Assembly: GCA_965240325.2 (NCBI GenBank)
Contig: OZ251225.1
Coordinates: forward strand, 2,914,001-2,978,000
From: Rebecca billardiae RCC1528
Taxonomy: Eukaryota; Protista; Haptophyta
Length of the DNA: 64,000 nucleotides
Direction: 5' to 3'
Below, in pieces: positions 600 through 40,173 of this stretch. Under the pieces are notes generated by a model. That model had not been told where the DNA came from. It saw only the letters and a program-made list of their open reading frames with translations, and made no database searches. Numbering within the stretch: the first letter of the stretch is position 1; every line of letters starts with the position of its first letter. The translations under genes were made by a program, and so were the position numbers.

Positions 600-630
<31 letters not shown>

Positions 631-2147: not shown

Positions 2148-2243
<96 letters not shown>

Positions 2244-13116: not shown

Positions 13117-14991
13117 CTAGTGGTGGAAGAGGCGCACGCCCGAGTGCGCCATCACCATGCCGTACTCGTTGGCGGCCGCAGTCACGCCCTCGTCCTGCAC
13201 CGAGCCGCCCGGGTGCACGAGGTATTTCACGCCGAAGCGAGAGGCGACGTCGATGTTGTCGCGGAAGGGGAAGAAGGCGTCGGACGCGATGCACACGCCC
13301 TGCAGGTGCTCCTGCAGGAAGGACTTCTTGTCCTCCGCCGTCAACGGCTGCGGCCGCACGGGGCGCGCGGGGGCGCGCCGCGCGCGCGTGAGCCGTCGCG
13401 TCGCGCGAGCGCGGACAGGGCGCAGGCGCGCTGATGCGTTTTGCGCGCGCGCGCGCACCTCGACGTCCGCGGTGAAGTTGGCCTTCCACTCGGCGAGCTG
13501 GATGTCGGTGAAGTCGCCCTCGATGTACTGCACGCGCGCGTTGATGCGGTCCTGCCGCTTCACCCCCTCCTTGAACGGCAGGCCGAGCACCTTGGGGTGC
13601 TGGCGCAGCGCCCACGTCTGCGTCTTCCGCCCGGCGAGCTTCACGCAGTCGACGCGCGACTGCTGCCCGGCGCCCACGCCGATCATCTGGCCGCCGTGCG
13701 CGTAGCCGACGGAGTTGGACTGGGTGTACTTGATGCAGATCTGCGCGAGCACCAGGTCGCGCTTCGCCCCGGCGGGCAGCTCCTTGTCCGCCGTCACGAC
13801 GGTGGCGAGCGTGCGCTCCGCGTTGATCCGCGCGTCGTTCCGACGCTGCTCGAAGCGCGCGCCGCCCATCTCGCGCCGCTCGAGCTGCGGCGGGTCGACG
13901 TCGGCGTGCGCGCGGAGGATGATGAACCCGCCCTTCTTCTTGGCGGCGAGGATCTCCAGCGCCGCCGGCTCGTAGTCCGGCGCGATGATCCCGTCGGACA
14001 CCTCCGTCTTGAGGAACTCGGCCGTCTGCACGTCCACCGGGTCGGAGAGGGCGGCAAAGTCACCAAACGAGCAGAGCGGGTCCGCCTGCCGCGCGCGGAG
14101 GTACGCGTTGGCGGCGGGGGAGAGCACCTTGCCCTCGACCTCGTACGCCTTCTCGAGCACCGGCGTGAGCGGCTCGAACACCGCCGCGCCCGCCGGGCTC
14201 ACGTGCTTGAACGACGCGGCGGCAGGCACGCCGAGCGCCGCGCGCGCCTCCTTGACCAGCTGCCACGCGTTGAGCGCGTCGAGCAGGTTGATGTACCCCG
14301 GCTTGCCGTTGAGCACGTCGAAGGGGAGCGGCGCGCTGCCGATGCCCGAGATGGACGCGGGGATCTGCTGCGGGTTGCACCCGTACTTGAGCGGCGTGAG
14401 CAGCTCCGAGCCCGCCTCGCGCTGCAGCCACGACGCAATTATGCTGTCGTAGTGCGCGGTGTGCGCAAACGCTTTCGCCGCCAGCTTGGCGCGCAGCTCC
14501 TTGGGCGGGCCGGCCGGGAGCGAGGAGATGACCGCGGCGTAGTCGGACGGATCGACCACGATGCTCACGCGCTGGTGGTTCTTCGCCGCCGCGCGCACCA
14601 TGCACGGCCCGCCGATGTCGATGTTCTCGACGCACGTCGCGTAGTCCGCGCCCTTCTCGACCGTCGCCTCGAACGGGTAGAGGTTGACGACGACGAGGTC
14701 GATCGGCTGCCCGCCGATCTCCTCGAGCTGCTTCAGGTCGGCCTCCAGCGGCCGCGCCAGGATGCCGCCGTGCACGCGCGGGTGCAGCGTCTTCACGCGC
14801 CCGTCCATCACCTCGGGCGACTGCGTGTACTCCGACACGTCCGTCACCTGCACGCCCGCGTCGCGCATCGCCTTGGCGGTGCCGCCTGTCGAGAGGATTT
14901 TGACGCCGCTCGCGGCGAGTGCCTTCGCCAGGTCGGCGAGGTTCGCCTTGTCCGAGACGGAGAGCAGGGCGCAGCGGATCTTCTCGGCCAT
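13117..14991 (-). CDS. ATIC: Bifunctional AICAR transformylase/IMP cyclohydrolase. Exons 14991-13459 and 13347-13117 (111-nt in-frame intron)
   Basis: ALLSVSDK, STGGTA, GRVKTLHPRVHGGIL, ENIDIGG, SFKHVSPAGAA, KYTQSNSV, GAGQQSR, ASDAFFPF, C-terminal RLFHH. Confidence 0.97.
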   Translation of the reverse strand: MAEKIRCALLSVSDKANLADLAKALAASGVKILSTGGTAKAMRDAGVQVTDVSEYTQSPEVMDGRVKTLHPRVHGGILARPLEADLKQLEEIGGQPIDLVVVNLYPFEATVEKGADYATCVENIDIGGPCMVRAAAKNHQRVSIVVDPSDYAAVISSLPAGPPKELRAKLAAKAFAHTAHYDSIIASWLQREAGSELLTPLKYGCNPQQIPASISGIGSAPLPFDVLNGKPGYINLLDALNAWQLVKEARAALGVPAAASFKHVSPAGAAVFEPLTPVLEKAYEVEGKVLSPAANAYLRARQADPLCSFGDFAALSDPVDVQTAEFLKTEVSDGIIAPDYEPAALEILAAKKKGGFIILRAHADVDPPQLERREMGGARFEQRRNDARINAERTLATVVTADKELPAGAKRDLVLAQICIKYTQSNSVGYAHGGQMIGVGAGQQSRVDCVKLAGRKTQTWALRQHPKVLGLPFKEGVKRQDRINARVQYIEGDFTDIQLAEWKANFTADVEVRARAQNASARLRPVRARATRRLTRARRAPARPVRPQPLTAEDKKSFLQEHLQGVCIASDAFFPFRDNIDVASRFGVKYLVHPGGSVQDEGVTAAANEYGMVMAHSGVRLFHH

Positions 14992-15711
14992 GGTCGGAGA
15001 CGTCGACGGGCGGCGGCGCTTTTGCTCCGTGGACTGCTGAGGCGACGCCACGCCCGCCCGGCCCGGGCGGGAAGCTTTTGCCGAAGGGAGTTGGCCCCGG
15101 ACCGCTCCGCTGTGAGTTGTGACACGCGGCACCTCTACGACTACGATGGCGCCGAGCGCCAGCGGGCAGTGTAGGCTTGCACTCGGCCTCCTCAGTCGCC
15201 GACCTCAACTGAGCGCTTGCAGAGCAGGGACAGCGTGTGCCACATGGCGCAGTCATGCATAGGCGCGCTCTCAGTGCACTCACCCCGTGCATCCATCCAT
15301 TCCCTCGGGCCCGAGCGAGCGGCGGCCTGCGGTCGTCAGTGACTCACATGAGCTGCAAGGCGTGCGCACCTTCACGTCAGTGCGTACGCGACACGAATAA
15401 TCGCGCGCACGCACTCGAAGTTCCCCGCCCGGCATGCGCACTGCCCGTGGGCTACAAAATATAATGTGAGCCACTGAGCCGTTCGGGTCGGCCGCCGACG
15501 CCATCGCCCCCGGGTCAGTGTCTGCCGTGAACAATCGCGACGCTGCCCCGGCTGCTCACGAAGATCAACGCTCGCAATCCTGATTTGTATTGATTGTCGA
15601 TTAGACGATTACCCACCTGCAAACTTCGATCAGATGATTAGATGAAGACGTGACGGTTGACCAGGACGCCGCTTTGCCCCCCGCCGGCCCGCCCGTGGTC
15701 CTCGCCGTACC

Positions 15712-18015: not shown

Positions 18016-18439
18016 TGGCACTGCGCAGGACGAGTGGCACGTCGCCCTTTGGACGGTGGCGACGGGCGACGGCGAGAACGCACGCGTCGTCGAAGAGTTC
18101 CTCCGCGCTGGGAGTCCACCGGACGCCCGCTGCTCACCAGATTCCGGGCGCTTCAGACCAGTCCTGGACACTTCCCGTCGTCGTCGGCTTCACTATTGGG
18201 TTGCGCGAGCGCTGCGCAGGGCTGGCCCGCCGCTAAAAGCCACACCCGACAACTCAGTTGAAGGTGAGCCTCCGCCGCCCCCCCCCCCCACCTCCTCGCG
18301 CCGAACCGAGGCGCGTCCAGACGCGTCCGTGCGGCGCGCGCGCGCCCATCCGTGCTTGACGTGTCCGTCACCTGGTCCCCGGGCTCTCGCGCCCGCCCGC
18401 CGCCTTCCGCTCTCCCCCCCCCCTTCACGCGCGGCAGAC

Positions 18440-18970
18440 ATGGCGCGTACGAAGCAGACTGCTCGCAAGTCGACCGGCGGCAAGGCGCCGCGTAAGCAGG
18501 TGCGCGCGCGCGCAGTGCGTCGCGCGTGGCGTGCGCGCGCGCCCGACGCTCGCCGCGCCCTCGCCGCGCCGCGCGCTGAGACTCGGTCCGCCCGCCCCCG
18601 CTCTGCGCGCGCCGTGCAGCTCGCGACCAAGGCGGCGCGCAAGTCGGCGCCGGCGACTGGTGGCGTGAAGAAGCCGCACCGCTACCGCCCTGGCACGGTG
18701 GCGCTGCGCGAGATCCGGCGGTACCAGAAGTCGACGGAGCTGCTGATCCGCAAGCTGCCGTTCCAGCGCCTCGTGCGTGAGATCGCGCAGGATTTCAAGA
18801 CTGATCTGCGCTTCCAGTCGTCGGCGGTCGTCGCGCTGCAGGAGGCGTCGGAGGCGTACCTCGTCGGCCTGTTCGAGGACACGAACCTGTGCGCGATCCA
18901 CGCGAAGCGCGTGACGATCATGCCGAAGGACATCCAGCTCGCGCGCCGCATCCGTGGCGAGCGCGCTTAA
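18440..18970 (+). CDS. H3: Histone H3, copy 1. Exons 18440-18499 and 18620-18970; additional 5' UTR intron about 18264-18437
   Basis: Canonical H3 sequence after removing a 120-nt GT-AG intron following KAPRKQ. A31 and S87-A-V-V90 are replication-type-like residues. Confidence 0.99.
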
Positions 18971-19087
18971 GCGTGCGTCGAGGACCTGGCGCCGCGTGAC
19001 CGTCAATCGGATCCGATGCGGATCTGATTGATCGCGCCCCCAGCCGAGCGTGGCAACAAACAACATTCAGCACAAAGCCAACTACCT

Positions 19088-19103
19088 GGTGTATATCTAC
19101 ACC
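19088..19103 (+). promoter_or_regulatory. Histone 3' stem-loop-like element GGTGTA-TATC-TACACC (H3 copy 1)
   Basis: 6-bp stem and 4-nt loop; identical 16-mer downstream of all three histone genes. Confidence 0.85.
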
Positions 19104-19840
19104 TTTGTCTGATCTCACGGGCGTACTGACGAGGTACGCGCGCGCGCCCGCGCCACCTGCGACCCGACGCAGCAGACTTGACGTTTGGTCGTTAGAGCGG
19201 GACTAGTTGTGGTTCGGACTGGCACGGTGACAACTCGTACTTTCGGTAACAGTCTGCGGCCCGTATACCGTATACGGCTACAGACAGTACAGGACAGGCT
19301 GACTGAGCCCGCGCCTGACACTGGAAAAGTAGCCATAACACTTAACAGGAGCGGTGGCTGCGGTACGTAACTACCGTAGTTGGTCGCTGGTACTGTTAGA
19401 TAACTCCGGGATAATTCTGAATAATTAATAACTGGCCGCATAGGCTGTTACTTGTCTATAGGTCGGTAATGATGATTATTGAGTGATTCAGCAATGATTG
19501 ACGATGTCGATGACATTGCTGACCCCGTCGGACCGGCGGAGTATTCGCTGGCCCGAATGCCAATGGCGGACCGCGAGCGCGTTACGAAGTGACACTGAGA
19601 CTGAGTAGGTCTCTGAGTACTGACTCAGCGTGAAACGGTCCGCGGCCGGTCGCCGTCGGACCAGTGTAAAGTGTAATGGCGCACAGGCTCCGACTCAAGT
19701 TATCGGACTCGCGGCCGTCGCGCATAATCAGTTAGTTACTGCACTCTGCAGTCAATGCGCATGCAGAGTCGCATGCCCTGGCTTTCCGGCGCGCCCTGTC
19801 CCTGTCTCACTCAGACAATTGTTATTGTTAGAAAGTGACA

Positions 19841-20342
19841 GCCGGCTCTGGCTTCGGTTGACCCCTGCCAGAGACGGGCACTGTGAGCTCCTTCATGAAG
19901 TCACTCGTGAAAACTGCACAGCAGGACCTCAATGGATGCCTAGATGATGACTTCAGAGCGATATTGGGCCGACAAGCACTTCCTCTATAGTTCAGACTCT
20001 ATTTTTACTATGTATTTACCCATTTCAGACTCTGGTCAGAACACGGTCCGGGAGCGATCCGGATGCACCCGTAGCTATTGGAAATGTGTCACCGGACTGG
20101 GTAAATAGCTATGAAAAAATAGAGTCTGAAGTAGTCACAAACTGAGCCTTCACACCCTGGGCACTTATTGGCCATCCATATTATATTATAAGATATATAT
20201 ATATATATAGCAACCCTTACCCTACTTGGGGCCCCGTGGGACACTTCGGGCGTTCATTCGGCCGCAGGAATGCGAAGATCATTTTCGGTACGCCCGGTTT
20301 CTATGACCGGACTGGCAGGGGTCAACCGGAGCCAGAGCCAGC
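19841..20342. mobile_element. Non-autonomous element with nested inverted repeats, copy 1: outer 31-bp IR (19841-19871 / 20312-20342) and inner IR (19991-20130)
   Basis: Outer arms are 29/31 complementary; inner arms TTCAGACTCTATTTTT...AAAAATAGAGTCTGAA; same layout at 43923-44530. Confidence 0.75.
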
Positions 20343-20959
20343 CGGGCCCGTGGCCGTGAGCCGCGACTCGCCGCCGACGGCCGAGTGCGGGTGCCCGAGC
20401 CCGGCGAGGGCTCGGGGTCAAGCGCTGGCGACATCGTCCGGTCTCATCGAGACCTCGTGAGACGCAGCCAGTAATGGCATCAATGCCCGCCAATGGCGGC
20501 AATGCCCAACCAATTGGCGGATTTGGCGGGCGCCGCGCCGCCGCGCCCGCGGGGCTTCCGGAATCCGGCGGCGGCTAGCCTTGGATTAGTCCAGAACGGC
20601 GAAGCGCGTTCTGCTCCGCGCGTATCGGCCCGTCGGTATCGGCGACCGTCGTAAGAACGCCCGTGGCCGAGCCGAGCTAAGTAGCCATCAGCGTGCCGCA
20701 CGGCCTCGCGCTGCCGGCTGCTGCCCCTGCGGCGGCGGCGGTCATGACCGTGCCAGCTACCGCACCACCCGTCTCGGGCCGCAGTGGCTGCCCCCTCGTC
20801 GGCCACACGGCGGCCACGGCTCGCTCCGTCTCCCCTGCGCATCGGAGAGCTCGCGCGCGTGGATCCACCAGCCCGCCCGCCCCCCGGGCTGGGTGGCAGG
20901 CAGCAGGATCCGCTCGCCAGCCGCCCGCGTGCGCCGCCGCCGCCAGCCCCGCCGCGCGC

Positions 20960-21969
20960 TCAGAAGCCCGGTTGTTGCATGAGCACCGCGCAGCCCGCGA
21001 GCAGCAGGACAATCACGGGCCAAGGCGTGCCGCCGCCCCCTCGTGCCTCGGCGGGCGGCAGCGGCGGCGGCAGCGCGACGACGGGGCGCGCGGCGCCCTC
21101 GTCTTTGAAGAAGAGCTCGCGCAGCAGGCGCATCGTGTGCTCCGGGCTCGTCACCGCGTGCCCGATCGTCCGCGGGTGCGAGTAGATCTCGTAGTCGTTC
21201 CCGCCCGGGCTCGTCTTGTCGCCGAAGAAGTGAATCTCAGGGATGCCCTCGAGGTACCTCAGGCAGAACGTCTTGTCCCACCCCTTGGGGAAGACGTCGA
21301 AGGAGATCTGCCCGCCGATGGAGAACTGCAGCCCCATCTTCGTGCCGAACTTCTCGCGCAGCTCCTTCACGAACTTGTCGCGCACGCCGTGCTTCTTGTC
21401 GTACTCCTCGAACGCGTCCCGCTCCTCCTGCGCGCAGTTGCGCCCGATCGGCGACACGTTGATCATCCCGTTGCGGAACTCGACAAAGGTGCCGCGCTTG
21501 ACGGGGATGTTGAGCGCCGCGATGTACTTGAGGCAGTGGTTCACGAGCTCCTGCGCGCGACGCGTCGCGCCGCGCGGCGCACGCGCGGCGGCTCGATGGC
21601 GTGAGCGGCGCCGACGCCGGCGGTGCGCGCATGCAGCGCGCGGCGCGGCGCGAGCGGCGCGCCGGCCGAGCGCACCTTGATGTTCTGCTCGCCGAGGTAG
21701 TCCTTGATGGATGTGCTCGCGAGCATTTCGCCGTCCTTGAAGGCGCACAGCCCATTCTCGGCGAAGAAGAAGTCAAAGTCCTTCTGGCAGCTCGGCCCCA
21801 GCTGCGACTGCTGCTTGCCCAGGTTCGAGCCGCCGACCACGCCGGTGAGCACCTTGGCGCGCAGCTGGCTGAGCATCGTCATCATCTCGGGCGTCGCCTT
21901 GTTCATCGACTTGGCGAGCGTGCCGTCCACGTCGAAGAGGCATAGCACGTTTGTATTCCGCTCGGGCAT
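20960..21969 (-). CDS. PMM: Eukaryotic phosphomannomutase (HAD family) with a C-terminal hydrophobic tail. Exons 21969-21676 and 21550-20960
   Basis: [68 protein letters not shown]. Confidence 0.96.
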
Positions 21970-22164
21970 CTCGGCGTCGTCGTGGCCACGTCTGCCGCCG
22001 CGATGATTGCGGCTGGACCACCTGACGAGACGCCCACGGCCGGGGAGCCAGCTGCTCACCAGCCGCCACAGCGCTGCTGCGCCTGCTGGCGCAGCGCCTG
22101 GGCAGCTGCTGCAGACCTGCGTGAGCGCGGGCGACAGAGTGGACGTTTCAAGGCCCTTCAAGTC

Positions 22165-25100
22165 ATGGCGGACGCGGGCCTGGGCGACGATGACGAGCAG
22201 GTGCGCCCTCGCGACGGCGCGCGAGGCCGGCGGGGCGGTTGGCGAGGGTGTCGCCGCGCCGTGCCAGCCGTCGCCCCCTACGCCTCTGCCCCGAGCCGAC
22301 CCCCGCCCTGCGCGCGTGCGCGCCTGCCGGCGGCCGTGCGCGCGCGCGCGCGCAGGTCGACGGCGCTCGGCTGCAACTGCAGCACGCGTTCGGCGGCCGC
22401 GTCTCGAGCGCGCGCGACGGCGTGATGTTCACGAGCGACTCGTCGGCGGTGTACCCCGTCGGCAAGTTCATCGCGCAGCACGACCTGCAGAACGCCCTGC
22501 AGGCCTTCCTCTACGAGCAGCCAGCCGTGATACAGGAGATCACGGCTCTGGCGATCTCGCCCAATCTCAAGTACCTCGCGGTGTGCGAGCTGCACTCGTC
22601 GTCGGGGCTGAGCAAGCCGGGGCGCGCGCAGGTCTCCGTCATCTTCCTCCCCACCCGCCGCTTCATGCGCACGCTCTCGCACCCCACGATGGAGGGGCCG
22701 GTCACGTGCGCGGCCTTCTCGCCTGACAACAAGGTGCTGATCGCGCAGGTCGGCGCGCCCGAGCACTCCGCCATCGTGTGGCACTGGGAGAAGGGCAAGG
22801 TGCGCGCCGCCGCGCGGCGTCGGCGCGAGCCGAGCCGACCCGCGCCCCGCCCGCGCCGCGGCCCGTCCGGCGCCTCGCTGCGCGCTGCGCTCGCGCTCAC
22901 TGCTCCGCGCCGCGCGCGCGCTCGCGCCGCGCGCCCGGCCGGGACGCGCGCGACCGCGCAGATGCTGAGCACGCTCAAGGCGCGCGCGGCGGTCACGCGC
23001 ATCCGGTTCAACCCGGAGCAGGCGCAGATGGTCTCCTCCTCCTCCCCGATGCGCGTGGTCCGGCTCAGCGACAAGGGCTACTTCAAGGACGTCGAGATCC
23101 CGGCGTTCCGAAAGCTCGGGGGCATCGAGGTGGCCGAGCACATCTGGCTGTCGGGCAGCCGGCTGCTCGTGCTCACGGCGGACGGGCTGGCGCACGGCTT
23201 CACGTCGGGCGAGCACATGTACACGGCGCGCTGGTGGGTGCCCGCCGTGCCGCGCGAGCAGCTCACGCCGAGCGAGCCCAGGCTGCTCGGCACGCAGCTC
23301 GAGAAGGATGAGGACGACGAGGCGGCCGCCGGGGGCGACGGCGCGCAGCGGGGCCACGCGTATGCGGGGGCGGAGGGCGGCCGGCGCTCGCGGCGCGGGT
23401 CCGGGGCGCAGGCCTCGCCCGGCCGGCACTCGCGCGGCAGCCACAGCGGCGCCGACTCCGAGGCGGACGGCGGGCGCTCGGCCGCGCCCGCCGACGCCGC
23501 GCGCCGCCGCCGCCCGTCGCAGCAGCGGCGCGGCTCGCGGCAGTCCGCTGACCAGCCCCACGGCCCGCGCAGCGTGAGCACGCCGAGCTCGGCGGGGCGG
23601 CCGCCCAAGCCGCCGTCGGCCGGCAGCACGCCGGGGCGCGGCGCGGGGGCGCCCGCCGTGGCGCCCCTGCCGCCGATCGCGCCGCCCGCGTCCGAGCTGG
23701 CTGACCACGCGGCGGAGGTGGCGCAGCCGCAGCCCGCGGCCGAGGGCGGCGACGGCGACGCTGGCGGTGACGGCGGCGGCGGCGGCTCTGGCGAGGGCCC
23801 TGGGGAGGACGGGGGCGAGACTGGCGCGGAGGGCGGCGACACGGCGCGCGGCGGCAACCGGCCGCGCTCGCGCGCGGGCAGCGTCGCCGACTCGGTCTCC
23901 GCGCCCTCCTACCCGCCGTACCGCGTCACCTGCGTCTGCCCCTTCGCCCAGGGTGTCCTTGCCGGCACCTCAGACGGCGCCGCGCTGCTGCTCGTCGACG
24001 ACGGACCATCGCAGCGGCTGCGGCTGGCGGCGACGGTGCGGCTGGACATGCGGCCGACGGCGATGATCACGATCAGCGTGAGCCCGACGGAGGCGGACGC
24101 GCTGATGCAGTTCGCGGACAACCAGATCGGCACCTTCTCCCTCCGCGCCATCCTGCGCCAGCTCGGGCTCGAGAGCAACGTGCAGGGCGGCGCGGGCGTG
24201 GCGACCGCGACGGCTAAGCTCGACGTCTCGGAGGGGCGGCCGGCGCGGCCGAGCGGGGAGCAGCAGCCGCTCTCGCCCGGCTCGACGGCGGCGCGGCCGA
24301 TCCTCGACGTGCCGTACGAGCTGCTCTCGAGCGGCTTCCACCGCGGCGCGCTCACCGGCCTCGCCGCCGCCATCGCCAAGCCGCTCCTCGTGTCATGCGG
24401 CGAAGACGGCTCGGTGCGCGTGTGCGCGTACGGGACGCCGCGCGCCACGCTGCTCGTGCACACGTGCGAGGACGGCGTGCCGCTCTCGGTGGGGATCCAC
24501 CCGCTGGGCGTGCAGATGTGCCTGGTGCGCAAGGACCGCGTCTCGCTCATGGAGGTGGGCACCGACGCCCTCTGGATCGGCCGCGAGCTCCACATCGCGC
24601 ACGCGACGCGCGCCGTGTACTCGACGGCCGGCGCGTACATTGCGGTAGCATGCGGCTCGACGCTGACCATCATCGCGGCGTTCTCCGGGATGCAGGTGGC
24701 GCGGCTGCAGGGGCACACGGGGACGATCCACGCGATGCAGTGGGCGCCCGACGACATGTCCATCGCCTCCGCCGGCTCGGACGGCATGATCTACCGCTGG
24801 TCGGTCGCGGACGGCACGCGCATCGAGGAGCACCACGCAAAGGGCGTGAGCTACCACGCGGTCGCCGTCGTCGTCGGCGTGAAGAGCCAGTACAAGGAGG
24901 GCACGGGCAAGAAGGAGGAGGGCGAGGGCGCGCAGGCCGCCGCGCGCCCGGGCGACCCGGCGAGCGGGCTGCTCGGCGGCGCCACCGACGTCGCCGAGGC
25001 GCACGAGCTGCGCGCGCGCCAGTCGCGCGGCGTGATTGAGCCTCACACGCGCACAGCCACGGTCGCCATTGGCACGGACATGAAGCTGCGGCTGGTCTCG

Positions 25101-27937
25101 TCGGGCGACGTGTCCGAGGTGTCGATCCTGTCGAGCCTCGCGGCCGCGGACGAGCGCCATCGCGAGGGCGCCGACGCCGGCCGAGACGCCGCCGCCGCGA
25201 CGACCAGCGTCGCCGCCGCGGCCGCGTCGGCGGCCGCGGCCAAGTCGGGCGGCGTGGTCGCCGCCGGCGTCGGCTCCTCCGCACCCGTCAAGTTCACGTC
25301 ACTCGCGGCGATGCACGGCGAGCCGATCCTGTTCGCCGGCACGCAGAGCGGCGAGATCCACGTGTTCACGGTCGAGGCGCGCTACTCGGACGACATCAGC
25401 GACATCACCACGCGCCGGCTCAGCCTGGGCGGCATGGGCGGCCCGCGCGAGCTCGCGCGCCGACACGGCCTGCCGGACGGCGACCGCAGCACCGGCGCGG
25501 GCACCCAGGGCGGCCCGGGCGTGCTGCGGCTGACGGCGCACCTGAACGTGGCGGCCTCGTCGCAGTCGGGGGCGACGGCGAGCCTCGCCGACCCGATCGC
25601 CGTGCTCGTCCCCGGCGGCTCGGGCGCAAAGTGCTTCCAGGCGCACCACGGGCGCGTCGGGCGGCTCACCGTCACGGCCGACGACTGCTTCCTGCTGAGT
25701 GCCGCGGACGACGGCTCCGTGTTCATCTTCAGCATCTCGCTGCAGACGCGCGCGGTCGACGCGCTCACGCAGCCCGTCTCGCTCTCCACGCTCGCCACGT
25801 CCGACGTCGTCTCGATCGGCCGGCGCACCATCGACGAGCTCAAGGGACAGCTCGAGGAGGCGCAGCTCGCCGCCGCCGAGCGCGACCTCACCGCCGACGC
25901 GGCGGTCGCGCGCGTCGAGGCGGCGTGGCGCGAGCGCACAGACCAGAAAGAGCGGAGCCACAACGAGGCGGTGGCGAGGCTGGAGCGCTCGCTCGCCGAG
26001 GCGCACGCGGCGCGGATGGGCGAGGCGTCGGCGTTCACCAAGCGGCTCGGCGCGCTCGCGCAGCACGCGGACAACCAGCGGCGCGAGGCCGCTTCCCACC
26101 TGGAGGGCGTGCTCAAGCTGGAAATCGAGCGGGCAGAGGGGCTGCAGCACTCGCTGGCCGCGCAGCAGGAGAGCGCAGAGGCGCGGCTCGGCGCGCTCGG
26201 CGCGCAGCTCGGCGCGGAGCGGGCCAAGGCGGCGGAGGCCGCGGCGGTGCACGCGCGCGAGATCGACAAGCTCGTCGCCGAGGCGCAGTCGCAGCTCGAG
26301 CGCACGCGCGCCGCGTCGGAGGAGGTTGCGCAGATGGTCGAGGAGGAGTACGAGTCTGAAGTATCGCACCTGAAGCGTGACACGGCCGCCAAGCTGGATG
26401 ACGCGCTCGCGGTGGCGGCGCAGCTGCGCGTCGACCGGATGGTCGACCGCAACCAGATGGCGAAGCGGCAGGAGCGGATCGAGCAGCTCGAGCGCTCGGT
26501 GGCCGAGAAGCAGCAGCTCCTCGTCAACTCGCACGCGCGCATCGAGGCGCTCGAGGGCCAGCGCGCCGCGCTGCACGCCGAGATCGAGGCGCGCGAGCGC
26601 ACGCTGGGCGAGCGCGAGCGTCAGTACCACGAGCTGTCTGAGACGGCGGTCAAGCTAGTCAACTGCCGCGACATGCTCGACTCGCGCGTCAAAGAGCTCG
26701 AGGTGCGGCGGGCGGCGCGCGGCACACACCGCGCGCGCGGCGCACACCGCTCGCGCGCGCGCACGCGCCGCTGCGGACATCGCGCCGCGCGGCACCGCCG
26801 ACACGGCGCGCGCGCGGCGCGAGCGCGGCTCGCGCGGCGCGCGCGGCCGCCGGCCGCTTGCGCGCGCGCGCGCGCTCACTCGCGCCGCGCGCGCCCCGCC
26901 GCCCACCCTCACGCGCGCCGCCGCGGGCACAGTCGAACGAGCGCTCGTCTGAGGCAGAGCGTCGCGAGCTGCGCGCCACGTCCGACGCGATGATGGCCGA
27001 GCTGCGCGAGCACGCGCGCGGGCGCGAGGCGAGCGAGCGCGCGCTCGTCGAGGCAAAGGCGGCGGCCGATCGCGCGGCCGACGGCCGGCGCGCCGCCGAG
27101 CGCCGCGCCTCGTCGTTCGAGGGACGGCTCGCGGTGCTTGCGGACGAGCTGTCGCGCATCGTGCAAAAGTCCTCGCGCTCGTGGGACGACGTGACCGCGC
27201 TGCTACAGGCGCACAACGACAACCCGGCGCCCAAGCACCCGCCGCACTTCGAGGCGGCCGCGCTCGCCGAGATGACCTGGCAGCGCGGCCAGACCGAACG
27301 TGAGGCCGCGCGGCTGCGCGCGCAGCTGCAGCACGCGCGCATCGAGCGCAACGGCGCGCTGCGGCAGCAGAAGATGGATAACGCCGACCTGCTCGTCGAC
27401 CTGAACTCGCTGCGCCGCGAGAACCACCGCCTCAAGCGCGCGCTCGCCAAGACCAAGGACATGGTCGCGCAGCACGTCGCGTCGCGCTACGCGGGCGAGC
27501 TCGCCATCGAGCGTGCGTCGACCGTGGCGGAGGAGCTGGGCTCGGACGAGTCGGACGACGAGTCGGAGGAGGACTCGGAGGAGGGCGACGAGCGCGCGTC
27601 GCCGCCCGCCACCGCGGACGCGCGGCACAACAGCAGCCTGCTCACGTCGGTGAGCCGCGCGCGCATGACGGAGCAGGAGCTCGAGCTGCGCGCGCTGCGC
27701 GAGCAGGTGTCCTTCTTCATGTCGCAGCCGATCGCCGGCGGCGTCACGACGCACGCGGTCCCCACGAGCGTCGGCATGCTGCACGCCGGCTCGACCATCT
27801 CGTCGCCGTCGTCGGCGGTCTCGGCCGCGCCGACCGTCCGGCGCGGCCGCGCGAACGGCTCGACGCAGCCCGCCGTGCGCTGGGAGCGTGCGGGCAACAC
27901 GATGATGCGCAAGACGGTGCCGCTGCCGCCTGTGTGA
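22165..27937 (+). CDS. CFAP57: CFAP57/WDR65-like axonemal WD40 plus coiled-coil protein. Exons 22165-22200, 22356-22799, 22962-26702, 26933-27937
   Basis: HAFG..VYPVG..ITALAISPNLKYLAVCE..AFSPDNKVLIAQ..WHWEKGK; HRGALTGL..KPLLVSCGEDGSVRV; long C-terminal coiled coil. Confidence 0.8.
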
Positions 27938-28136
27938 AGCTTGGAACGGCGGTACTGAGGCACCACTGAGCCGTGTAACTGTCTGTAGTCTGTTTCGCGT
28001 ATTTTTGGCTCGCGGCTGTGTAGTATCATAGTACATTTTCATGCTATGGGGATCTAGATACAAGTATTGTACCGCTTCGGCTCATCACTGCATGCATGAT
28101 TCTGCTCGCGCTGGGCCGAGCGCCGCCCTGAACCTC

Positions 28137-29678
28137 ATGGCTGCCAGCAATGTCGATGCCCGGCCGCGGGGCCAAGCAGTCAGGCCGCTCGCCGGGTTGC
28201 TTCTCGTAGCGACGCGTGTTTTCGCGCCGTACTGCCCAAACGCGGCGATCGCACCTGCAGACGCTGCCGAGCGGCTGCGAGCTCACCACACGGAGCTGCG
28301 CAGCCGATGTGGCTTCCGGCCGCTCAACGGCGCGCCTGCGACCTCGGGCCGGATGCCGCCGCGCGATTTACGCCTGGCCTCTGCGTGGACGACGCCAGTG
28401 CTGCCGCACTACGAAAACGACGACTGGCCAAAACCCGCGCACTGCAAGACGCTGGACCCACACCTCCCCGCATTGACGTGTGATGTCCCCACGCGCTTCC
28501 TCACAACGCCACCTCGCGGGCAGCGCGAACCTCCTGGGCAGCCACTCGTCGTCCAGCTCGTATGGAAGGCGGGGATCACGACGCTGAAGCACTTTTGGCG
28601 GTGCGCGTTCGACCAAAAGCGCCACACTTCCTCTGCCGATTTTGTGCCCGAGTCGCAGCTCGGTGAAGCCACCGTGCGTGTCGGCATGACGCGCGATCCG
28701 ATCGAGCGGCTGCTGTCCTCGTATGGAGAGATCCTCAAGCGCACGACCGAGGTGGTGCGCGGCGAGCGCGAGGGGCAGGCCTTCCGACTGCCAGGCCTGC
28801 GACAGATCGAGCGCGTCGTCGCGTCCACAGACCGCTCGCTGAAGAAGGCACACCACGGTCGCAACCAAGCCTTGCGGCAAAGCACGCCCACGCGCGAGCG
28901 CTGGCGAGCGAAAATCACAGAGTCGGAGCGCGCAGCAGCCGCAGCTGGCGCGGCCGTCGAGACGCCGCAATCGGGAGCCGCAGACCCCACGGCCAGCGCA
29001 CGCAACGCTATTCTGCGCGACCCGATCGGCGCCCTGCAGCGGGCCGGTGTCGGTTGGCTTGTGGCTGGCTGGACAGGCGGCGTGCCGCAGTACGAGCCGG
29101 ACCGGAATGGCGGGCTGGCGCTGGTGGCGCGCGGTGAGCTGAACGAGAGCGAGCGCTTCTCGCACTTTGTCCGCTCGCTGGAGTGCGTCTAGCGCTACGT
29201 GAGCTGGCAGCATGCGGCGACAGCCTCCGCGTTCATGAGCGCAGACCATGTCGTTTCGACCACTGCGCAGGAGGCTGACTGGCTCGCAGCAGGGTGGTGG
29301 CAGCGGGAGCGGCGCAAAGCCGAGGGGCGGCGGCTGCAGCGCAAAGCCAAAGCCAAAGGGCAGTGCGCGCAGCATGAGCTGCCAGCACCGCGCGTGACCG
29401 AGCTGATTCGGCAGGAGTCCTTCGAGTCGGACCTTCTCCGGGTCGTCCGTCGGACCAACGCGACCATCCCGTCCAATTGCACAGTGGAAGCACGCAACCC
29501 GTCAAGACTGCACGCGCTTGAGCCTGGCTTCCCGTCTAAGAGCACACTGCGCGAGGTGCTTGAGCGCGACCCACAACTCATGCGCATCGTCTGCCGCGTG
29601 TACTTCCAGGATTTCACGTGCTTTGGCTACCCGCTGCCCCCGGCGTGCCGGGATCCGGATACTAGTCCGTGTCACTGA
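28137..29678 (+). pseudogene. Sulfotransfer_2 family gene interrupted by an in-frame TAG at 29190-29192
   Basis: VWKAGITT and RDPIERLLSSYGE lie upstream of the stop; RIVCRVYFQDFTCFGYPLP lies downstream in the same frame. Confidence 0.65.
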
Positions 29679-30466
29679 GTCTGACTCTGAGTCAGTGTTC
29701 GGAGACCCGGCCGCGGCGCCCACGGGTTCCGCAGGTGACGGGCGCAGGTCCAGGGCAGGGGGCGGGGCAGGAATGGGACGGCAGCCGACTCACTGGACGA
29801 GCAGTGCGGCGCGGTAAATTATTAGAAACGACGACGACGGATAATTCGTTGGTCAAGAAGGTCAACGACTGGACACTCGTCGTCTTTTTTTCGTAAGTCA
29901 GTGGGCAGACCGTGGCGCGTGCGGCGTCACTGTGACTGGGCCTGGCGACACTGTCCGAGACACTGACAGGCGAGACGCGAGTGGCGTCAGGCGTGACTCG
30001 GTGAGTCGGTGGCGGGCGCCCGGGCCCCGGGGCGGCCCGTGTGGCCGGCCCGCGGGCGGACTTTGTAGTGATGCTGCTTGATGGAGCTAGTGTAGTAGTG
30101 ATGACTGAGTTTCGACTTGGGAATAGTGGCAGCATCGTCCGGTCCGTGGCGCCCGTGCGATGTGCCCAGCGGCAGCGATACTATCACTAGACACTACTGC
30201 GCGCAATGATGATGCTGAAATATATATATATATATATACTTTATTTCGGAAAAATATTTCGGGTAAATCGGATATGACCGCGTTCCGCGGTCTTTTTCCG
30301 TAGAACGAACGTAGTTCGGGGCCCGCGGCGCACCCTCCGTCGGCTGCTGTGTCAGTCTGACATGTGTAACAGTTCGCCTGAGCTGCCACCGCCAACTCAG
30401 TCACTGCCGCCCACCGGGCCGGCGGGCCGAGGACTGTCGCCGCGGGTCCGCGGGCCGCCGCGGGGA

Positions 30467-31855
30467 CTAGCGGCCGGCGCGCGCGCGCAGGCAGGACGAG
30501 AGGCGCTGGCGCGGCGCGAGCCGGCGCGTGCGCGCGAGCGGGCGCACCTGCTTGAGGTACTCGCCCTGCGCCATGCGCTCGACGACGGGCCGCTGGTCGC
30601 TCGTGCCGGCAGAGCGAGAGCGCGCGCCACTGCTGGCCCCGGCCTGCCGGCTGCGCAGCCTCGCACCGAGACCGACCGAGCGGAGCTCGGGGCGGTGGAA
30701 CGAGGCGAGCGGCGCGTCGCGCCTGCCGCCGCGCGTGCGCGCCTGCTCCACCGCGCCGCCGTGCTCGCCCGCCGCCTCCTCCGCCGCGTCGGCCTCGAAG
30801 ACGGCGGCTGCCAGCGGCAGGCTGAGCCGCGCGCCGGCTCACTCACACTGTGAGTCACACCCGCGGTCGCCTCGACGGCCAACTATCCACAGCTGCTCGA
30901 GCTGCTGGAGGGCGCCGCGACGATGGCGGCGCGGGCGCCCAGCGCGTCCGTTGCTGCGTCGCTCAGCTCGTCGAGCTCGGCGCCGCACTTCGCCAGCTTG
31001 GCGCCTAGCGCCTCCGCGTGTCACGTGCTCGTGCACGTCAGCCTGCTGATACGCCGCCGCCCATCGGCACTTCTGGCATCTGCGCGCGCAGCTGCTGCAG
31101 CTCGACGGCGGAGTCGTCGCGGCTGGCGGCGAGGGTGCGCACCGCGTCGATTGCCGAGGCCTGCAGCCCGGTGATCGCCGCGTCGACGCGCGCGGCGATT
31201 TCCCCACGCAGCTCCTCGCGCCACGTGGCCGCCGCTCGCGTGGCAGGCAGCTGGGCACCGCTGCGCGACCCGGAACCGGCGCGCGTTTCACTGATGCTCC
31301 TGCTCGTCCTCACGCTGCTGCACCTCCGCGCCGCCGTCGACCGAGTTGAGGAGGAGCTCGCGCTCGGCGTCGAGGCGCGAGCTCGCGTGCTCGAGCTTGC
31401 CCTTCAGCCGCGCGAGCTCCGGGCGCATCCGGCTCATCAGCTCTGCCGCGCCCGCTCGCTCGCAGCGGCGCGCTCTGCTCCGGGCGGCGAGCGACGAGCT
31501 CGCGTGCTCCGGACTCGGCTCGCCCTTGCGCGCTGCTCCTCGAGTGACGAACGCCTGCGGGGCACGAACGAAAGTCGGTGATCAACCGCGCAGCGCCACC
31601 GCTGCCGAGTGCGCCCTCCGCCGCCAGCACCTTGCGGACCTGGCCAAGGAGCTGCTTGATCGCTTTTGTTGACACGCCGTACTCGCTCGCGGCGCCGGGG
31701 ATGGTCTGCTTGTGCCTGGCGACGGAGATGGCGGCAGCGGTGCTCTGGAACGTGGTGTTGTTCACCCGCGTCACCGTCCTCGAGTCGAGCAGCGCGTTCA
31801 ATACGCGGCGAACGTAGTCCTGGTCGGCGTCGCCGGTCGAGGTGCTGCTTGCCAT
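30467..31855 (-). pseudogene. Fragmented coding relic: N-terminal HTH-like segment followed by coiled-coil pieces in different frames
   Basis: AAISVARHKQTIPGAASEYGVSTKAIKQLL resembles psq/CENP-B-type HTH. Pieces such as LMSRMRPELARLKGKLE and WREELRGEIAARVDAAI are separated by stops or frameshifts that I cannot cleanly splice. Confidence 0.35.
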
Positions 31856-32171
31856 CGCCCCCCACCCACGTGCGATCGGGCCCACCTCTGTTGTTTTGCG
31901 TCGGTGACGGGGCCGCGACGACTTGACGCGAGCATCTTCAATAATCTATGATCATCTCAGGGTTACTACGTGAAGCGGTAGAATAGAATTTCATTTACGA
32001 GCATTGATACGACGCGGTGCAACGTGAAGCGGTTTTTTTTAAGATACGACGCGGTCTAATGACCCATTGTTCATACATGTACATGAATGGGTCGTCATAA
32101 ACGGCGGGCGGCTCATTTATGACCAGACCGGGCCCTGGGTGATTGATGATCAGAACCCGCAAAAGCTAGCG

Positions 32172-32231
32172 GCAGTCCAGCACACAAGTAATGAATTAAT
32201 AACAAGCGCAGTCCAGCACACAAGTAATGAA
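32172..32231. repeat. 24-bp direct repeat GCAGTCCAGCACACAAGTAATGAA x2 (32172-32195, 32208-32231)
   Basis: Read directly from the sequence. Confidence 0.9.
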
Positions 32232-32233
32232 CG

Positions 32234-32590
32234 AATGGCCCGCGGTGCCGGCTGGCTATCTAGATACGTCGTCATCGCTCCTTGATGACCTTGCGGCAAT
32301 CTCATTGGCTGGAAAAAATCGCTTGTAACGGTTCGTTACGTTATGGATCCTAAAGGGCGTGAAGTTTTTTGGACGGGCGTCACTCCAATATGAACTTGCC
32401 GTGGGCGCGACCTTTTTCGGCCGTGATGCATGTTATTAGAGAGGGTCTCAAAATTCGAAACTCGGTCTCCTCCAGCCCTGAAAATCGTCCCCCGTCCCTT
32501 TTTTCTTGATCAAAGATCTTTTTGAAACGTTGTTCGGGCCCGCTGGTGCGGGCTCCACGCTGCGCGCTCCGCCCTGCACCGCGGGCCATT
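32234..32590. mobile_element. MITE-like element, 357 bp, with perfect 15-bp terminal inverted repeats
   Basis: AATGGCCCGCGGTGC ... GCACCGCGGGCCATT; non-coding AT-richer interior; the right end recurs at 38960-39012. Confidence 0.7.
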
Positions 32591-32823
32591 ATAAATAAAA
32601 CTCAGTTGCAGCCGCATGCCGGGCATGACCAGCTTGACTTTGAGTTGTCAACTATCTATTGAGTTGTCAGACTTGGCGTCAGTTTATAGACACCGCCGGT
32701 CAGCACCCGACACCCACTACCCAGTCACCGTCTGTCAATCAGGTGTGAGTCGACTGGTCCCGCATATTGAGCCTGCGACGGCCGACACTGGGCCGACACC
32801 ACTCCCGAGGAGACAAGAGAAAG

Positions 32824-32839
32824 GGTGTAGATATACACC
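32824..32839 (-). promoter_or_regulatory. Histone 3' stem-loop-like element (H3 copy 2)
   Basis: Reverse complement is GGTGTATATCTACACC, about 130 nt after the stop codon. Confidence 0.85.
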
Positions 32840-32970
32840 TGGAAGAATTCAGCGTGGACACACGCTTGATGGAGTCGTGGCGAGTGCGCGGCCCGGGCGA
32901 CTGGGCCGGGAGGCCGGGCTCACCGCCAGCGAGACCAGGGTTGGCAGCGGCCAGCAACGGATGCTGGTGC

Positions 32971-33501
32971 TTAAGCGCGCTCGCCACGGATGCGGCGCGC
33001 GAGCTGGATGTCCTTCGGCATGATCGTCACGCGCTTCGCGTGGATCGCGCACAGGTTCGTGTCCTCGAACAGGCCGACGAGGTACGCCTCCGACGCCTCC
33101 TGCAGCGCGACGACCGCCGACGACTGGAAGCGCAGATCAGTCTTGAAATCCTGCGCGATCTCACGCACGAGGCGCTGGAACGGCAACTTGCGGATGAGCA
33201 GCTCCGTCGACTTCTGGTACCGCCGGATCTCGCGCAGCGCCACCGTGCCAGGGCGGTAGCGGTGCGGCTTCTTCACGCCACCGGTCGCCGGCGCCGACTT
33301 GCGCGCCGCCTTGGTCGCGAGCTGCACGGCGCGCGCAGAGCGGGGGCGGGCGGACCGAGTCTCAGCGCGCGGCGCGGCGATGGCGCGGCGAGCGTCGGGC
33401 GCAGGCGCACGCCACGCACGACGCACTGCGCGCGCGCGCACCTGCTTACGCGGCGCCTTGCCGCCGGTCGACTTGCGGGCAGTCTGCTTCGTACGCGCCA
33501 T
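32971..33501 (-). CDS. H3: Histone H3, copy 2. Exons 33501-33442 and 33321-32971; 5' UTR intron about 33665-33504
   Basis: Protein identical to copy 1, with the same 120-nt intron. Confidence 0.99.
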
Positions 33502-33665
33502 GTCTGCCGCGCGTGAGGGAGAGGGAGGGGGGGCGGCGGAAGGGGGCGAGCGACGGTCAATGCTATCAGTAGCGTGCACGACTCGCGCGCTGCGCGGCAC
33601 GGCGTTCGCGCGCACGGCGCCGCACGCGGCGCCTGCGCGCAACGTTGGGGGACGCGCGCGCGCAC

Positions 33666-33848
33666 CTGCTGAGTGCTTGTGTTCGAATGGGTGAACTTGG
33701 GAAGGTGAAAGACGAGCGGCGGCTGTGTCGCGCTCGCGAACGACGGTTGGGTCTCGTCAATACGAGTTTGAATACTACGAGGCTCGTCCGCCAATCTAAC
33801 GGTCAAATCTCGTGCCTCCAAGCCAGGTCAAACCGAGCCGCCGAGCAG
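33666..33848. promoter_or_regulatory. Compact bidirectional promoter and first non-coding exons of H3 and H2B; CCAAT at about 33791
   Basis: Only about 180 bp lie between the two outward-facing CAG|GTGCG 5' UTR intron donors. Confidence 0.6.
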
Positions 33849-34078
33849 GTGCGTAGCTCCCCCGCGTGGTTCGCGTGCGCGTCCTCGCGCTCCCGCGCGG
33901 TGTGCAGAGCTCTCGCGCCTGAGAGGCGGCGCCACGCGCGTGGTGTGTGTGGCGCGGCACTGCATGTCGCGCCGCCCGCGCCCCGGCTCACCCTCGCCTC
34001 CCACCCCGCGCGCGCGCACTTCACGTTCGCGCGGCCTCGCGATGGCCTGCCGTCGCCGCCGCGCGCAGTCCAGCAGCC

Positions 34079-34547
34079 ATGCCCGCCAAGAAGACGCCCT
34101 CCAAGAAGATCGTCAAGAAGTCCGTGAAGAAGTCGGGCGACAAGAAGAAGAAGTCGAAGAAGCGCACCGAGAGCTACTCCTCGTACATCTACAAGGTGCT
34201 CAAGCAGGTGCACCCGGACACGGGCATCTCGTCCAAGGCGATGTCGATCATGAACTCGTTCATCAACGACGCGTTCGAGCGCATCGCGACGGAGGCGGGC
34301 AAGCTTGTTCGCTACAACAAGAAGGGCACGCTTTCGTCGCGCGAGATCCAGACGGCGGTGCGGCTCATCCTGCCGGGTGAGCTCGCCAAGCACGCCGTGT
34401 CCGAGGGCACCAAGGCGGTGACCAAGTACACGAGCAACCAGGTGTGTGGACGCTCGCGGGTGCCCGCTGGTGTGTCTGTGTCGACGCGCGCTCATGCACT
34501 CACGGCTCGCGCCCCCCCATGCCGCCCCCGTCGCCCGCGCGCAGTAA
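34079..34547 (+). CDS. H2B: Histone H2B. Exons 34079-34441 and 34545-34547 (stop codon only); 5' UTR intron 33849-34068
   Basis: [47 protein letters not shown]; junction CAG|GTGTGT...GCGCAG|TAA. Confidence 0.97.
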
Positions 34548-34645
34548 ATGGTTGGCGTGTCCGACGCTGCCGCACTCTGGTGCTGCCCGTGCAGCAGTCA
34601 TGGGGATCGAGTCTGCGGCTGCGCCGCTGTTCGGACCCCTCTTTC

Positions 34646-34661
34646 GGTGTATATCTACACC
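34646..34661 (+). promoter_or_regulatory. Histone 3' stem-loop-like element (H2B)
   Basis: GGTGTATATCTACACC, about 100 nt after the spliced stop codon. Confidence 0.85.
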
Positions 34662-35721
34662 CCTGCAGACATCTCATCGGTGCAACCAGGGCTACGGCTG
34701 GCTTTGGCAGCCAGCCGCATTGTCCTGCGTGGCACACTACCCCGATCTTCATCGACCAACTGCGCGTCCCGCCGCGACGGCGACGGCCGGCTCGAACGCC
34801 CGAGCCGGGGTGACTCTGCAGTCTGCTGAGTGAGGAGTCGCGCGGAGCGCCAGCGAGGCCTGGCATGGTAAGGTAAGGCACGCGCGCGCGCCCCTGCTGC
34901 GCTCTACCGCGCGCGACGAAATCAAGAACCATTACGAATATATTTTTTAAATTAAATTTTAAAAGCTCTAGGACTAGGCGGTGGCGTCGGGCGCCTCTGG
35001 CGTCGGCCGATTGCCGAACCGTGACGACTAGTGACTGCAATAAAGTAACCGAGGCTAGAGTCTGACTCAGATACTGCTGCTATTAGATCGCGGCGGATCG
35101 AGAGAGCGTACCGATGTCGATGACTACGACGGATGTCGAGATGTCATCTAATTCCATCGGGCCAGGCCCGGGCCAGGGCCCGCCGGCCCCGGGCCCGGCA
35201 TCGGCCATCGGGCGGCCGTACCCGGGCGGCCGCGGCCGGTCGCCTCGGCCGGGCGGTGGTGAAGTGTCGAGCGAGCTGACTGAGTAGACAGTGGTGAGTG
35301 CCGTGGCGCCGCATCAATGGCGCATTAGACGCGAGATGGAGTGATGGCTCACTTGGATGGGGCGAAACTTCCGCCGCCTTCGGGGGGAAGACAGACGGGG
35401 AAGTGCGGCCGAGTGCCGTACGACTACGGAGTACGGGAAGTGGCGGCCGAGTGCCGAATGGCGAATGGGATGATGAGTGAGGATCGGCGAGCAGTGTCAG
35501 TTGATTGACAGAGCCGGGTCGCGGCAAAGGGCGAGATGATAGATGCCGCCAGTGAGGGGAGGATGCGGCGCCGTGCGGCCGTGCTCGGCGGGCCCACCCG
35601 TCGACTGCGACGCCGGTCTGAGCGACAGCTCAGTGCGCCGGAGCGCAGCAGGCCGCACGCTCAGCCGTCACCGATCGGCTCGGGGCACGGCACTGGCGCG
35701 GGCATCCGCGACGAAGCAGCC

Positions 35722-39012: not shown

Positions 39013-39236
39013 AATATGTATAACGATCTGACGATATATATATACATGACGGTCAGATACGTATAGGCTCCGTGAGTGATATATGGCGCTGCTGCTATAC
39101 TGGCACTATTACTGGGTGCTCGTCATCAGCAGCGCATCAGTCACAGATTCATGACAGATCAGTCATCAGACCCTGGGCCTGGCGGTGACCCGCCAGCTCA
39201 GTCTGCCTCAGAGACAGAGAAGCATGCATCGTCGTC

Positions 39237-39237
<1 letters not shown>

Positions 39238-39327
<90 letters not shown>
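39238..39327. repeat. (TA)45 microsatellite
   Basis: Read directly from the sequence. Confidence 0.97.
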
Positions 39328-39329
<2 letters not shown>

Positions 39330-39755
39330 CGCCAAGATGGGGCGGGACACGTGGCGCGCGCGCCTCAGCGCGCCCTCGCGCCCCGCCGCCGAGCGCGCGC
39401 TGCTCGGCACCATGCGGCGCGAGCTGGGCATGCGCTGCCTGCGTGGCCAGGCCAAGATGCTCATCGCCCGCGCGCGCATGGCGCACGTGCGCCCGGGGGC
39501 ACGCGCCCGCGGGGGCGCTGCATACGACGACTACTTCGAGACGACTGCTGACGACGCGTGGCACCGCGACCACCGCGGTGGCGCGTGCGCGTCGACGCCA
39601 GACGGTGCGTCGAGCTTCCGCTCGGCGATGGAGTGATGGGCGACTATGAGGGGGGGGACGACGGCGAGGAGCGCTGATCCTGGTGTTTGTCTCTGCTGCT
39701 CGATCTGCTGCTACAGCTTGCTGACTCTGACGCCTGCCCGTTGCATACCACGTCG

Positions 39756-39758
<3 letters not shown>
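39328..39758 (+). mobile_element. 5'-truncated non-LTR retrotransposon 3' end (CRE-like) embedded in a (TA)n tract
   Basis: GC-rich coding fragment with no 5' part (..MRRELGMRCLRGQAKMLIAR.., stop at 39636) plus a 3' UTR, flanked directly by (TA)n on both sides. The peptide resembles the terminal xLSxxLQRGNAxM helix of CRE-type ORFs. Confidence 0.55.

Positions 39759-39829
<71 letters not shown>
39759..39829. repeat. (AT)35 microsatellite
   Basis: Read directly from the sequence. Confidence 0.97.
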
Positions 39830-39830
<1 letters not shown>

Positions 39831-40173
39831 CTTATATTACGACTACTGCGCTACCTACGGCGCACTCGACGACGACGATACAGCTAGTCGTAGTCGTAGC
39901 TATGGTCGCAATATATGAGGCTACAACACTTAACATCACTGACATCACGACGATGACATCACACCAGACAGACGGCGACTACGGCGCCCGCCGGCGGCGC
40001 CGCGGCGGACGCGATTCGCACTGATTCGCGCGACGCCGCGCTGCCCGTGCTCGGCTGTTGGCTGAAGTTGGCTCACGTACTTTGAGGGGCGATGGCTACC
40101 CCGCGAACGCCATGGTGTGCCGCTTGCCACGCCGGAACTGCTGCTAGAGGCTGACTGTAGGGCTGCGCTGCCT

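Follow-up and report, generated by a model that had tools for sequence, protein, structure and literature searches.

A short hairpin in the 3' untranslated regions (UTRs) of histone genes in the haptophyte Rebecca billardiae RCC1528 is, with a probability of roughly 70%, the pavlovophyte version of the classical 3' stem-loop of replication-type histone mRNAs, likely bound by SLBP and accompanied by a diverged downstream element. The hairpin, GGTGTA-TATC-TACACC, was found in a 64-kb stretch of the genome, referred to here as the window (64,000 nucleotides (nt); GenBank assembly GCA_965240325.2, contig OZ251225.1, positions 2,914,001 to 2,978,000 of the forward strand; all coordinates below count from its first letter). 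It is specific to histone genes and to their sense strand, is connected by a graded series to canonical forms, is kept by compensatory change, and is followed by a second conserved box. The original prediction, made by a model from the letters of the window, was that of a lineage-specific histone 3'-end system. This holds insofar as the element is a 3' UTR hairpin specific to histone genes and to their strand, akin to the SLBP stem-loop and restricted to one lineage, with a box at the position of the histone downstream element (HDE).

The hairpin in the window

The exact 16-mer (GGTGTATATCTACACC) occurs three times in the window, each time in the sense orientation relative to the histone gene that it follows. 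The first copy (19088-19103, + strand) follows the stop codon of H3 copy a by 117 nt, within the 3' UTR; the second (32824-32839, - strand) lies 131 nt past the stop of H3 copy b, and the third (34646-34661, + strand) 98 nt past that of H2B. With up to two mismatches allowed, the window contains otherwise only the reverse-strand readings of these same three sites. There were no matches to the 16-mer in 100 dinucleotide shuffles of the window, and not even one copy is expected by chance. These results agree with the original prediction as to the positions, the orientation and a spacing of about 100-130 nt from each stop.

A six-frame scan for diagnostic histone motifs detected no histone genes in the window beyond two for H3 and one for H2B, and all three carry the hairpin. 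No other gene does, as judged by a filter-free covariance-model scan of both strands in which the three sites were the top three hits, and here too the original prediction was right. It had further held that the three UTRs share nothing else. That is correct for H2B, whose UTR has only a 16-17-mer in common with either H3 UTR; the two H3 genes, on the other hand, share a 36-nt island around the hairpin, which is all that they have in common beyond the stop.

All three sites have the 6-base-pair (bp) stem and 4-nt loop of the histone stem-loop family as well as its two basal G-C pairs (GG...CC). The loop reads UAUC, with U at loop positions 1 and 3. The hairpin belongs to the minimum-free-energy fold in each of the three sequence contexts, and alone it has a folding energy of -5.8 kcal/mol.

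A graded series of related hairpins

Relatives of the window were collected by retrieving loci with H2B from two sources, the assembly index and JGI metagenomes, and the hairpins that follow their histone genes were listed. The metagenome collection was scanned for H2B relatives rather than for the bare 16-mer, because chance matches would swamp a search of that size. The related histone loci connect the window hairpin stepwise to the canonical histone stem-loop. The closest step is formed by two loci with H2B of 94% identity (L083 and L084), which carry the exact 16-mer about 110 nt past the stop in UTRs that otherwise resemble neither each other nor those of the window. The genome of Pavlovales sp. 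CCMP2436 (L001), with 90% identity the closest named H2B relative, has the form GGTGTA-TTTC-TACACC. The conservation in relatives that the original prediction implied is thus found in these three loci.

Further steps lead to the textbook form. Loci with H2B of 89-93% identity (L085, L087-L089, L100, L002, L090-L096) have GGTGTT-TNTN-AACACC followed by ACC, and a locus with about 99% identity over residues 29-120 (L006) has GGTGTT-TATT-AACACC, again followed by ACC. Several loci with identities of mostly about 81-89% have GGATTT-TCTA/TATA-AAATCC, then (A/G)CCC and CAAAGA. Finally, several loci with identities of mostly about 67-80% have the textbook GGCYCT-TTTC-AGRGCC, then ACCCA and a purine-rich box. 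Among the relatives the stem is mostly preceded by ...AACC and followed by ACC. In loci with several histone genes (L005, L019, L032, L072, L075), one hairpin type stands behind H2A, H2B, H3 and H4.

In some environmental relatives (L051, L016, L036 and L052), loop position 1 of the histone hairpins is not U. Locus L051, for example, has GGTGTT-AATT/ATTT-AACACC after H3, H2A and H2B (924-955, 1700-1731 and 2948-2979). Another example is the form GGTGAA-AATA/ATTA-TTCACC, with two A-U pairs atop the stem. The hairpins without the loop-1 uridine are farther from the consensus than is the window element. The histone cluster of another locus (L081) contains two 5S ribosomal RNA genes and a transfer RNA gene between histone genes (3316-3897 and 5179-5251), and poly(A) runs precede its stem-loops.

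Pairing and loop conservation

A sign that the structure itself is maintained comes from all sites of the pattern GGTGTN-N4-NACACC in about 350 kb, comprising the window and the related loci. All 35 lie in the sense orientation less than 500 nt downstream of a histone motif, and occurrence of the motif at non-histone loci, which would have counted heavily against the original prediction, was not found in this sample. The closing pair is complementary in every one of the 35 (6 A-U, 29 U-A, none unpaired), which makes the A-U pair of the window a double change of the compensatory kind. The A-U form was found in the window sites, in L001 and in L083 and L084; U-A closes the loop in 33 of 38 distinct stem-loops of the relatives. 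Compensatory change of the kind that the original prediction proposed to look for is therefore seen, with the closing pair swapped between A-U and U-A and no unpaired intermediate among the 35 sites.

Counts of whole hairpins give a similar picture. Frames of the form GG-N4-TNTN-N4-CC have all four inner pairs formed in 93 of 115 cases in histone-downstream zones, compared to 31 of 142 elsewhere, and perfect GG..CC hairpins are about fourfold denser in these zones. The loop of perfect hairpins is TNTN in 90 of 108 cases in histone-downstream zones and in 29 of 168 elsewhere. Among 79 stem-loops of the relatives, T is conserved at loop position 3 in at least 90% and at loop position 1 in at least 70%.

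In the set of 38 distinct stem-loops, pairs 1 and 2 are invariably G-C and pairs 3 to 6 show three or four pair types each; the rows of this set were picked for full pairing, and the count speaks for the diversity of pair types, not for pairing itself. The same caution applies to the two alignments A2 and A3. Only fully paired stems were admitted to them, which makes their pairing of 100% circular; the counts over all sites and over frames are less so. The rows of A3 were also picked for a TNTN loop, and its invariant T7 and T9 follow by construction.

Covariance models

The standard Rfam model of the histone stem-loop, RF00032, follows the graded series. It passes the gathering score, at 34-42 bits, on the canonical GGCYCT forms; of the five GGATTT-stem sites in the searched loci one passes as well, and so does one related GGATCT-stem site. 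The GGTGTT forms receive 22-24.5 bits (E 0.003-0.03).

A second covariance model, R1, was built from the 79 stem-loops of the relatives, with the window, L001, L083 and L084 left out. In a filter-free search of both strands of the 64 kb, R1 ranks the three sites first to third, at 14.1 bits (H3 copy a), 11.6 bits (H3 copy b) and 11.6 bits (H2B), and the next hit has 9.1 bits. It also finds the left-out loci, at 23.6 bits for L001, 23.1 for L083 and 16.2 for L084. The scores in the window are lower because the flanks there have diverged.

The downstream box

A second conserved feature lies shortly past the stem, where the original prediction had noted a TCTC word at about +10 to +14. In the window, a TCTCA box followed by CGGG begins at +10 from the stem of H3 copy a (19113-19117, + strand; a candidate downstream element), a TCTC box followed by CTCGGG at +11 from that of H3 copy b (32810-32813, - strand), and a TCTCA box followed by TCGG at +11 from that of H2B (34672-34676, + strand). 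The observation extends beyond the window: TCTC starts +10 to +12 past the stem in all six UTRs of the GGTGTA class (the three in the window, L001, L083 and L084), and 5000 shuffles produced no 4-mer placed likewise in all six. The box is usually TCTCA, with YGG within a few bases after it.

In the GGATTT class, CAAA(GA), the classical purine-rich HDE, is found at +10 to +12 in 19 of 20 cases, and the TCTC box thus occupies the HDE position. The nearest GGTGTT-type relatives (L066, L085, L087, L100) already have TCTC or pyrimidine runs downstream, and L066 has a word nearly identical to that around the H2B TCTCA box (cttctctcatcgg). Other GGTGTT loci have a YCGGAA-like word in place of TCTC.

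A probable histone 3'-end signal and its alternatives

If the hairpin is a histone processing signal, the 16-mer would be transcribed within the 3' UTR and would fold into the 6-bp stem and 4-nt loop, to which an SLBP-type protein would most likely bind. The TCTC(A)...YGG box 10-20 nt downstream would stand in for the HDE and might be recognized by a partner such as a U7-like RNA. Cleavage would presumably occur just 3' of the hairpin, at a place set by the downstream element. Together, hairpin and box would most likely bring about a mode of 3'-end formation specific to histones and couple the level of histone mRNA to DNA replication.

What is known of SLBP fits this scheme in part. The only base-specific contact of the protein is with the second G of the stem (G7-Arg181), and full affinity needs two 5' adenines and one 3' adenine (PMC10388802). 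The G that SLBP reads is retained at all three window sites. The main known needs of SLBP are kept, namely the shape of the hairpin, the second G of the stem and the uridines of the loop; the closing pair, the flanks and the box have changed.

Several observations weigh against a processing signal of the classical kind. The canonical U-A closing pair is absent from the window sites, where A-U takes its place. The 3' flanks after the stem are TTTGT, CTTTC and CCTGC, with no ACC(CA), and the A-rich 5' flank is missing as well, apart from a partly A/C-rich stretch at site 1 (19088-19103) only. An AAAGA-type purine-rich box, the usual mark of an HDE, is absent downstream of the window hairpins, and the hairpin lies farther from the stop than in most relatives. 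An Rfam scan at gathering thresholds gave no hit in the window. RF00032 in particular has no match there at the gathering score, nor at E-values up to 5-10, and a permissive Rfam scan of the whole window returned neither RF00032 nor U7; at site 1, such a scan gave only a chance match to a long non-coding RNA. The suspicion that standard models may miss the element was evidently justified. Even with R1, the E-values of the window sites are marginal when taken one by one (0.18-0.9).

A further difficulty is that L083 and L084 extend 380-450 nt past the hairpin. These are probably transcript contigs: their 5' ends are identical, as in isoforms, and a neighbouring JGI sample has the transcript-like L099. 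If so, at least some transcripts read through the hairpin. This is an argument for the most serious alternative, which is unlikely on balance and yet deserves consideration: that the hairpin derives from a histone stem-loop and now serves as an internal stability or translation element, with or without SLBP, in mRNAs that are cleaved and polyadenylated farther downstream. The TCTC box would then be the site of another protein or part of a poly(A) signal. The lack of an ACCCA cleavage context and of a purine-rich HDE, and the unusually long distance from stop to hairpin, also favour such an internal role, and a 2026 bioRxiv preprint, a survey of protist histone stem-loops (10.64898/2026.10.14.759114), describes early-diverging fungi in which features of the stem-loop and of poly(A) occur side by side. 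However, a second box at exactly the HDE position is a better fit to a two-part processing signal than to an isolated internal hairpin. In addition, L083 and L084 are only putative transcripts, and assemblies from poly(A)-selected RNA would enrich rare read-through forms.

It is very improbable that the 16-mer acts as DNA, as a palindromic transcription terminator or as the site of a DNA-binding protein specific to histone genes, with no RNA hairpin being formed. The stem arms do make a perfect palindrome outside the coding region, as such a site might. However, the asymmetric loop always reads TNTN in the sense of the gene, at 6 of 6 GGTGTA-class sites and in about 90 relatives, and the sequence of the stem changes freely but its pairing persists. 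A loop fixed in the sense direction, together with free variation of a paired stem, points to an RNA or single-strand structure and not to a sequence-specific duplex site. Finally, the 16-mer can hardly be a repeat that arose by chance, a remnant of gene conversion or a piece of a mobile element: the H3 genes may be recent duplicates or homogenised copies, but H2B is a different gene and carries it too, the surrounding UTRs are unrelated, the element stands at the same place in other species, and chance, repeat and transposon origins are effectively refuted by the shuffles, the relatives' loci and the 35 histone-downstream sites.

Returning to the stem-loop as a processing signal, three features are specific to the lineage: its closing pair is flipped to A-U, the A-rich 5' and ACC(CA) 3' flanks have been lost, and it has the pyrimidine box. 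One can tentatively suggest, as a possibility somewhat more doubtful than not, that the two-part 3' signal was rewired as a unit in pavlovophytes, with the closing pair inverted, the flanks touched by SLBP and 3'hExo lost, and the HDE replaced by TCTC(A)..YGG. If this were true, one would expect either a U7-like small nuclear RNA with a purine-rich 5' end (..UGAGA..) and a co-evolved SLBP, or a reader of the box that is independent of U7. In either case the result would be a natural polarity swap of the HDE:U7 duplex.

Comparison with known systems

The metazoan system of RF00032 stem-loop, SLBP and U7 shares with the window the 6-bp stem, the 4-nt loop, the two basal G-C pairs and the uridines at loop positions 1 and 3. 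It also shares the sense orientation in the 3' UTRs of core histone genes and a second conserved box about 10-12 nt past the stem. The window differs in its A-U closing pair, its UGUA/UACA upper stem, the lack of an A-rich 5' flank and an ACCCA 3' flank, and a pyrimidine box of TCTC instead of AAAGAG. Other differences are the 98-131 nt from the stop, the presence of introns and the failure to match RF00032.

Protist histone stem-loops are described in the survey mentioned above (Zhao, Bond, Ni Leathlobhair; 10.64898/2026.10.14.759114) as varied in sequence, farther from the stop and with folding energies of about 0 to -8 kcal/mol, a range that includes the window hairpin. A flipped closing pair and a pyrimidine downstream box are not described in that main text, nor are haptophytes named there; the hairpin screen of the survey would catch the element, and its supplement may list it. 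The original prediction had called the element non-canonical on several grounds, of which the A-U closing pair stands. The A at loop position 2 and the upper stem that departs from YYY do not, being common in protist stem-loops, some of which pass RF00032.

The nearest comparison is with the GGTGTT-TNTN-AACACC stem-loops (L002, L006, L085-L096, L100), which probably belong to prymnesiophyte haptophytes, GC-rich and marine. They have five of the six stem pairs, loops of TTTC, TATC or TCTC, and the histone context in common with the window. They differ in having a U-A closing pair, an ACC 3' flank, a distance of 20-60 nt from the stop and RF00032 scores of 22-24.5 bits.

Green algae offer a further parallel. 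Fabry and colleagues reportedly described, in 1995, Chlamydomonas and Volvox histone genes with 3' palindromes. As in the window, these are algal histone genes, some of which are said to have introns, with a stem-loop rather than the plant-type arrangement of poly(A) only. The green-algal stem-loops are said to be near the animal consensus and to have purine-rich HDEs, and the window hairpin has neither property.

Histone stem-loops, SLBP and U7 factors are already known from outside animals, and what is described here is not a new system. What is new is the inversion of the closing pair, the loss of the flanks and the presence of a pyrimidine box where the HDE would stand, along with the clear series of intermediates. 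A literature search found no paper that links SLBP or the histone stem-loop to haptophytes or Pavlovales.

The histone genes and their surroundings

H3 gene a (18441-18970, + strand) consists of exon 1 (18441-18500), a GT-AG intron (18501-18619) and exon 2 with the stop (18620-18970), and the predicted intron is required for an intact H3 reading frame. H3 gene b (32971-33501, - strand) is 96.7% identical to copy a, intron included; the identity extends over 18394-18972 versus 33552-32969, from the last part of the 5' region through coding sequence and intron. The two genes are about 14 kb apart, in opposite orientation and with unrelated flanks. Their similarity suggests gene conversion or a recent duplication restricted to the transcribed core. 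Upstream of both (18240-18440 and 33505-33700) are long runs of C or G and an apparent GT...AG intron in the 5' UTR, and H2B has a similar acceptor 10 nt 5' of its ATG.

The H2B gene (34079-34547, + strand) has a coding exon at 34079-34441, a putative intron at 34442-34544 and the stop at 34545-34547. The frame runs through ...KYTSNQ to 34441, with GT directly after, and the TAA stop lies beyond the putative 103-nt GT-AG intron, which would therefore fall between the last sense codon and the stop. In the H2B genes of L001, L083 and L084 the stop comes right after ...KYTSNA and there is no intron at this place. The exact H2B product of the window has no record in the assembly index.

Short, strongly A+T-rich islands, with T and A runs and one AATAAA-like word, are found at 32500-32620 and 34930-34970, about 200-330 nt past the hairpins of H3 copy b and H2B, although the G+C content of the genome is about 70%. 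These islands may mark the boundaries of genes or signal termination. The G+C content within the window is about 63-84%, and positions 1-4000, at 80-84%, are well above the remainder. A cluster of weak, sub-threshold Rfam matches at 39227-39932 (models of small nucleolar RNAs, microRNAs and viral UTRs) is probably repetitive or hairpin-rich sequence.

The PurH gene (13120-15132, - strand) is 82% identical to an MMETSP transcript and 74% identical to Pavlovales sp. CCMP2436; prymnesiophytes, Chrysotila among them, follow at about 63%. PurH and H2B together suggest that the window belongs to a pavlovophyte-like haptophyte, one without an entry of its own in the protein collection.

Implications

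Polyadenylation of mRNA has a single major exception, histone stem-loop processing, and work on how the latter evolved outside animals is still under way. In the locus and its relatives, the gradation that leads from the canonical stem-loop to a form missed by the standard Rfam model can be followed with unusual clarity. Locus and relatives also provide natural experiments, namely a compensatory flip of the closing pair, a loss of flanks and an exchange of a purine for a pyrimidine box at a fixed distance, which can be used to probe what SLBP-type and U7-type factors require. For annotation, the hairpin marks replication-type histone genes in these genomes. Because the series leads into a form invisible to RF00032, haptophytes, one of the major groups of marine algae, are probably underrepresented in current surveys of the system.

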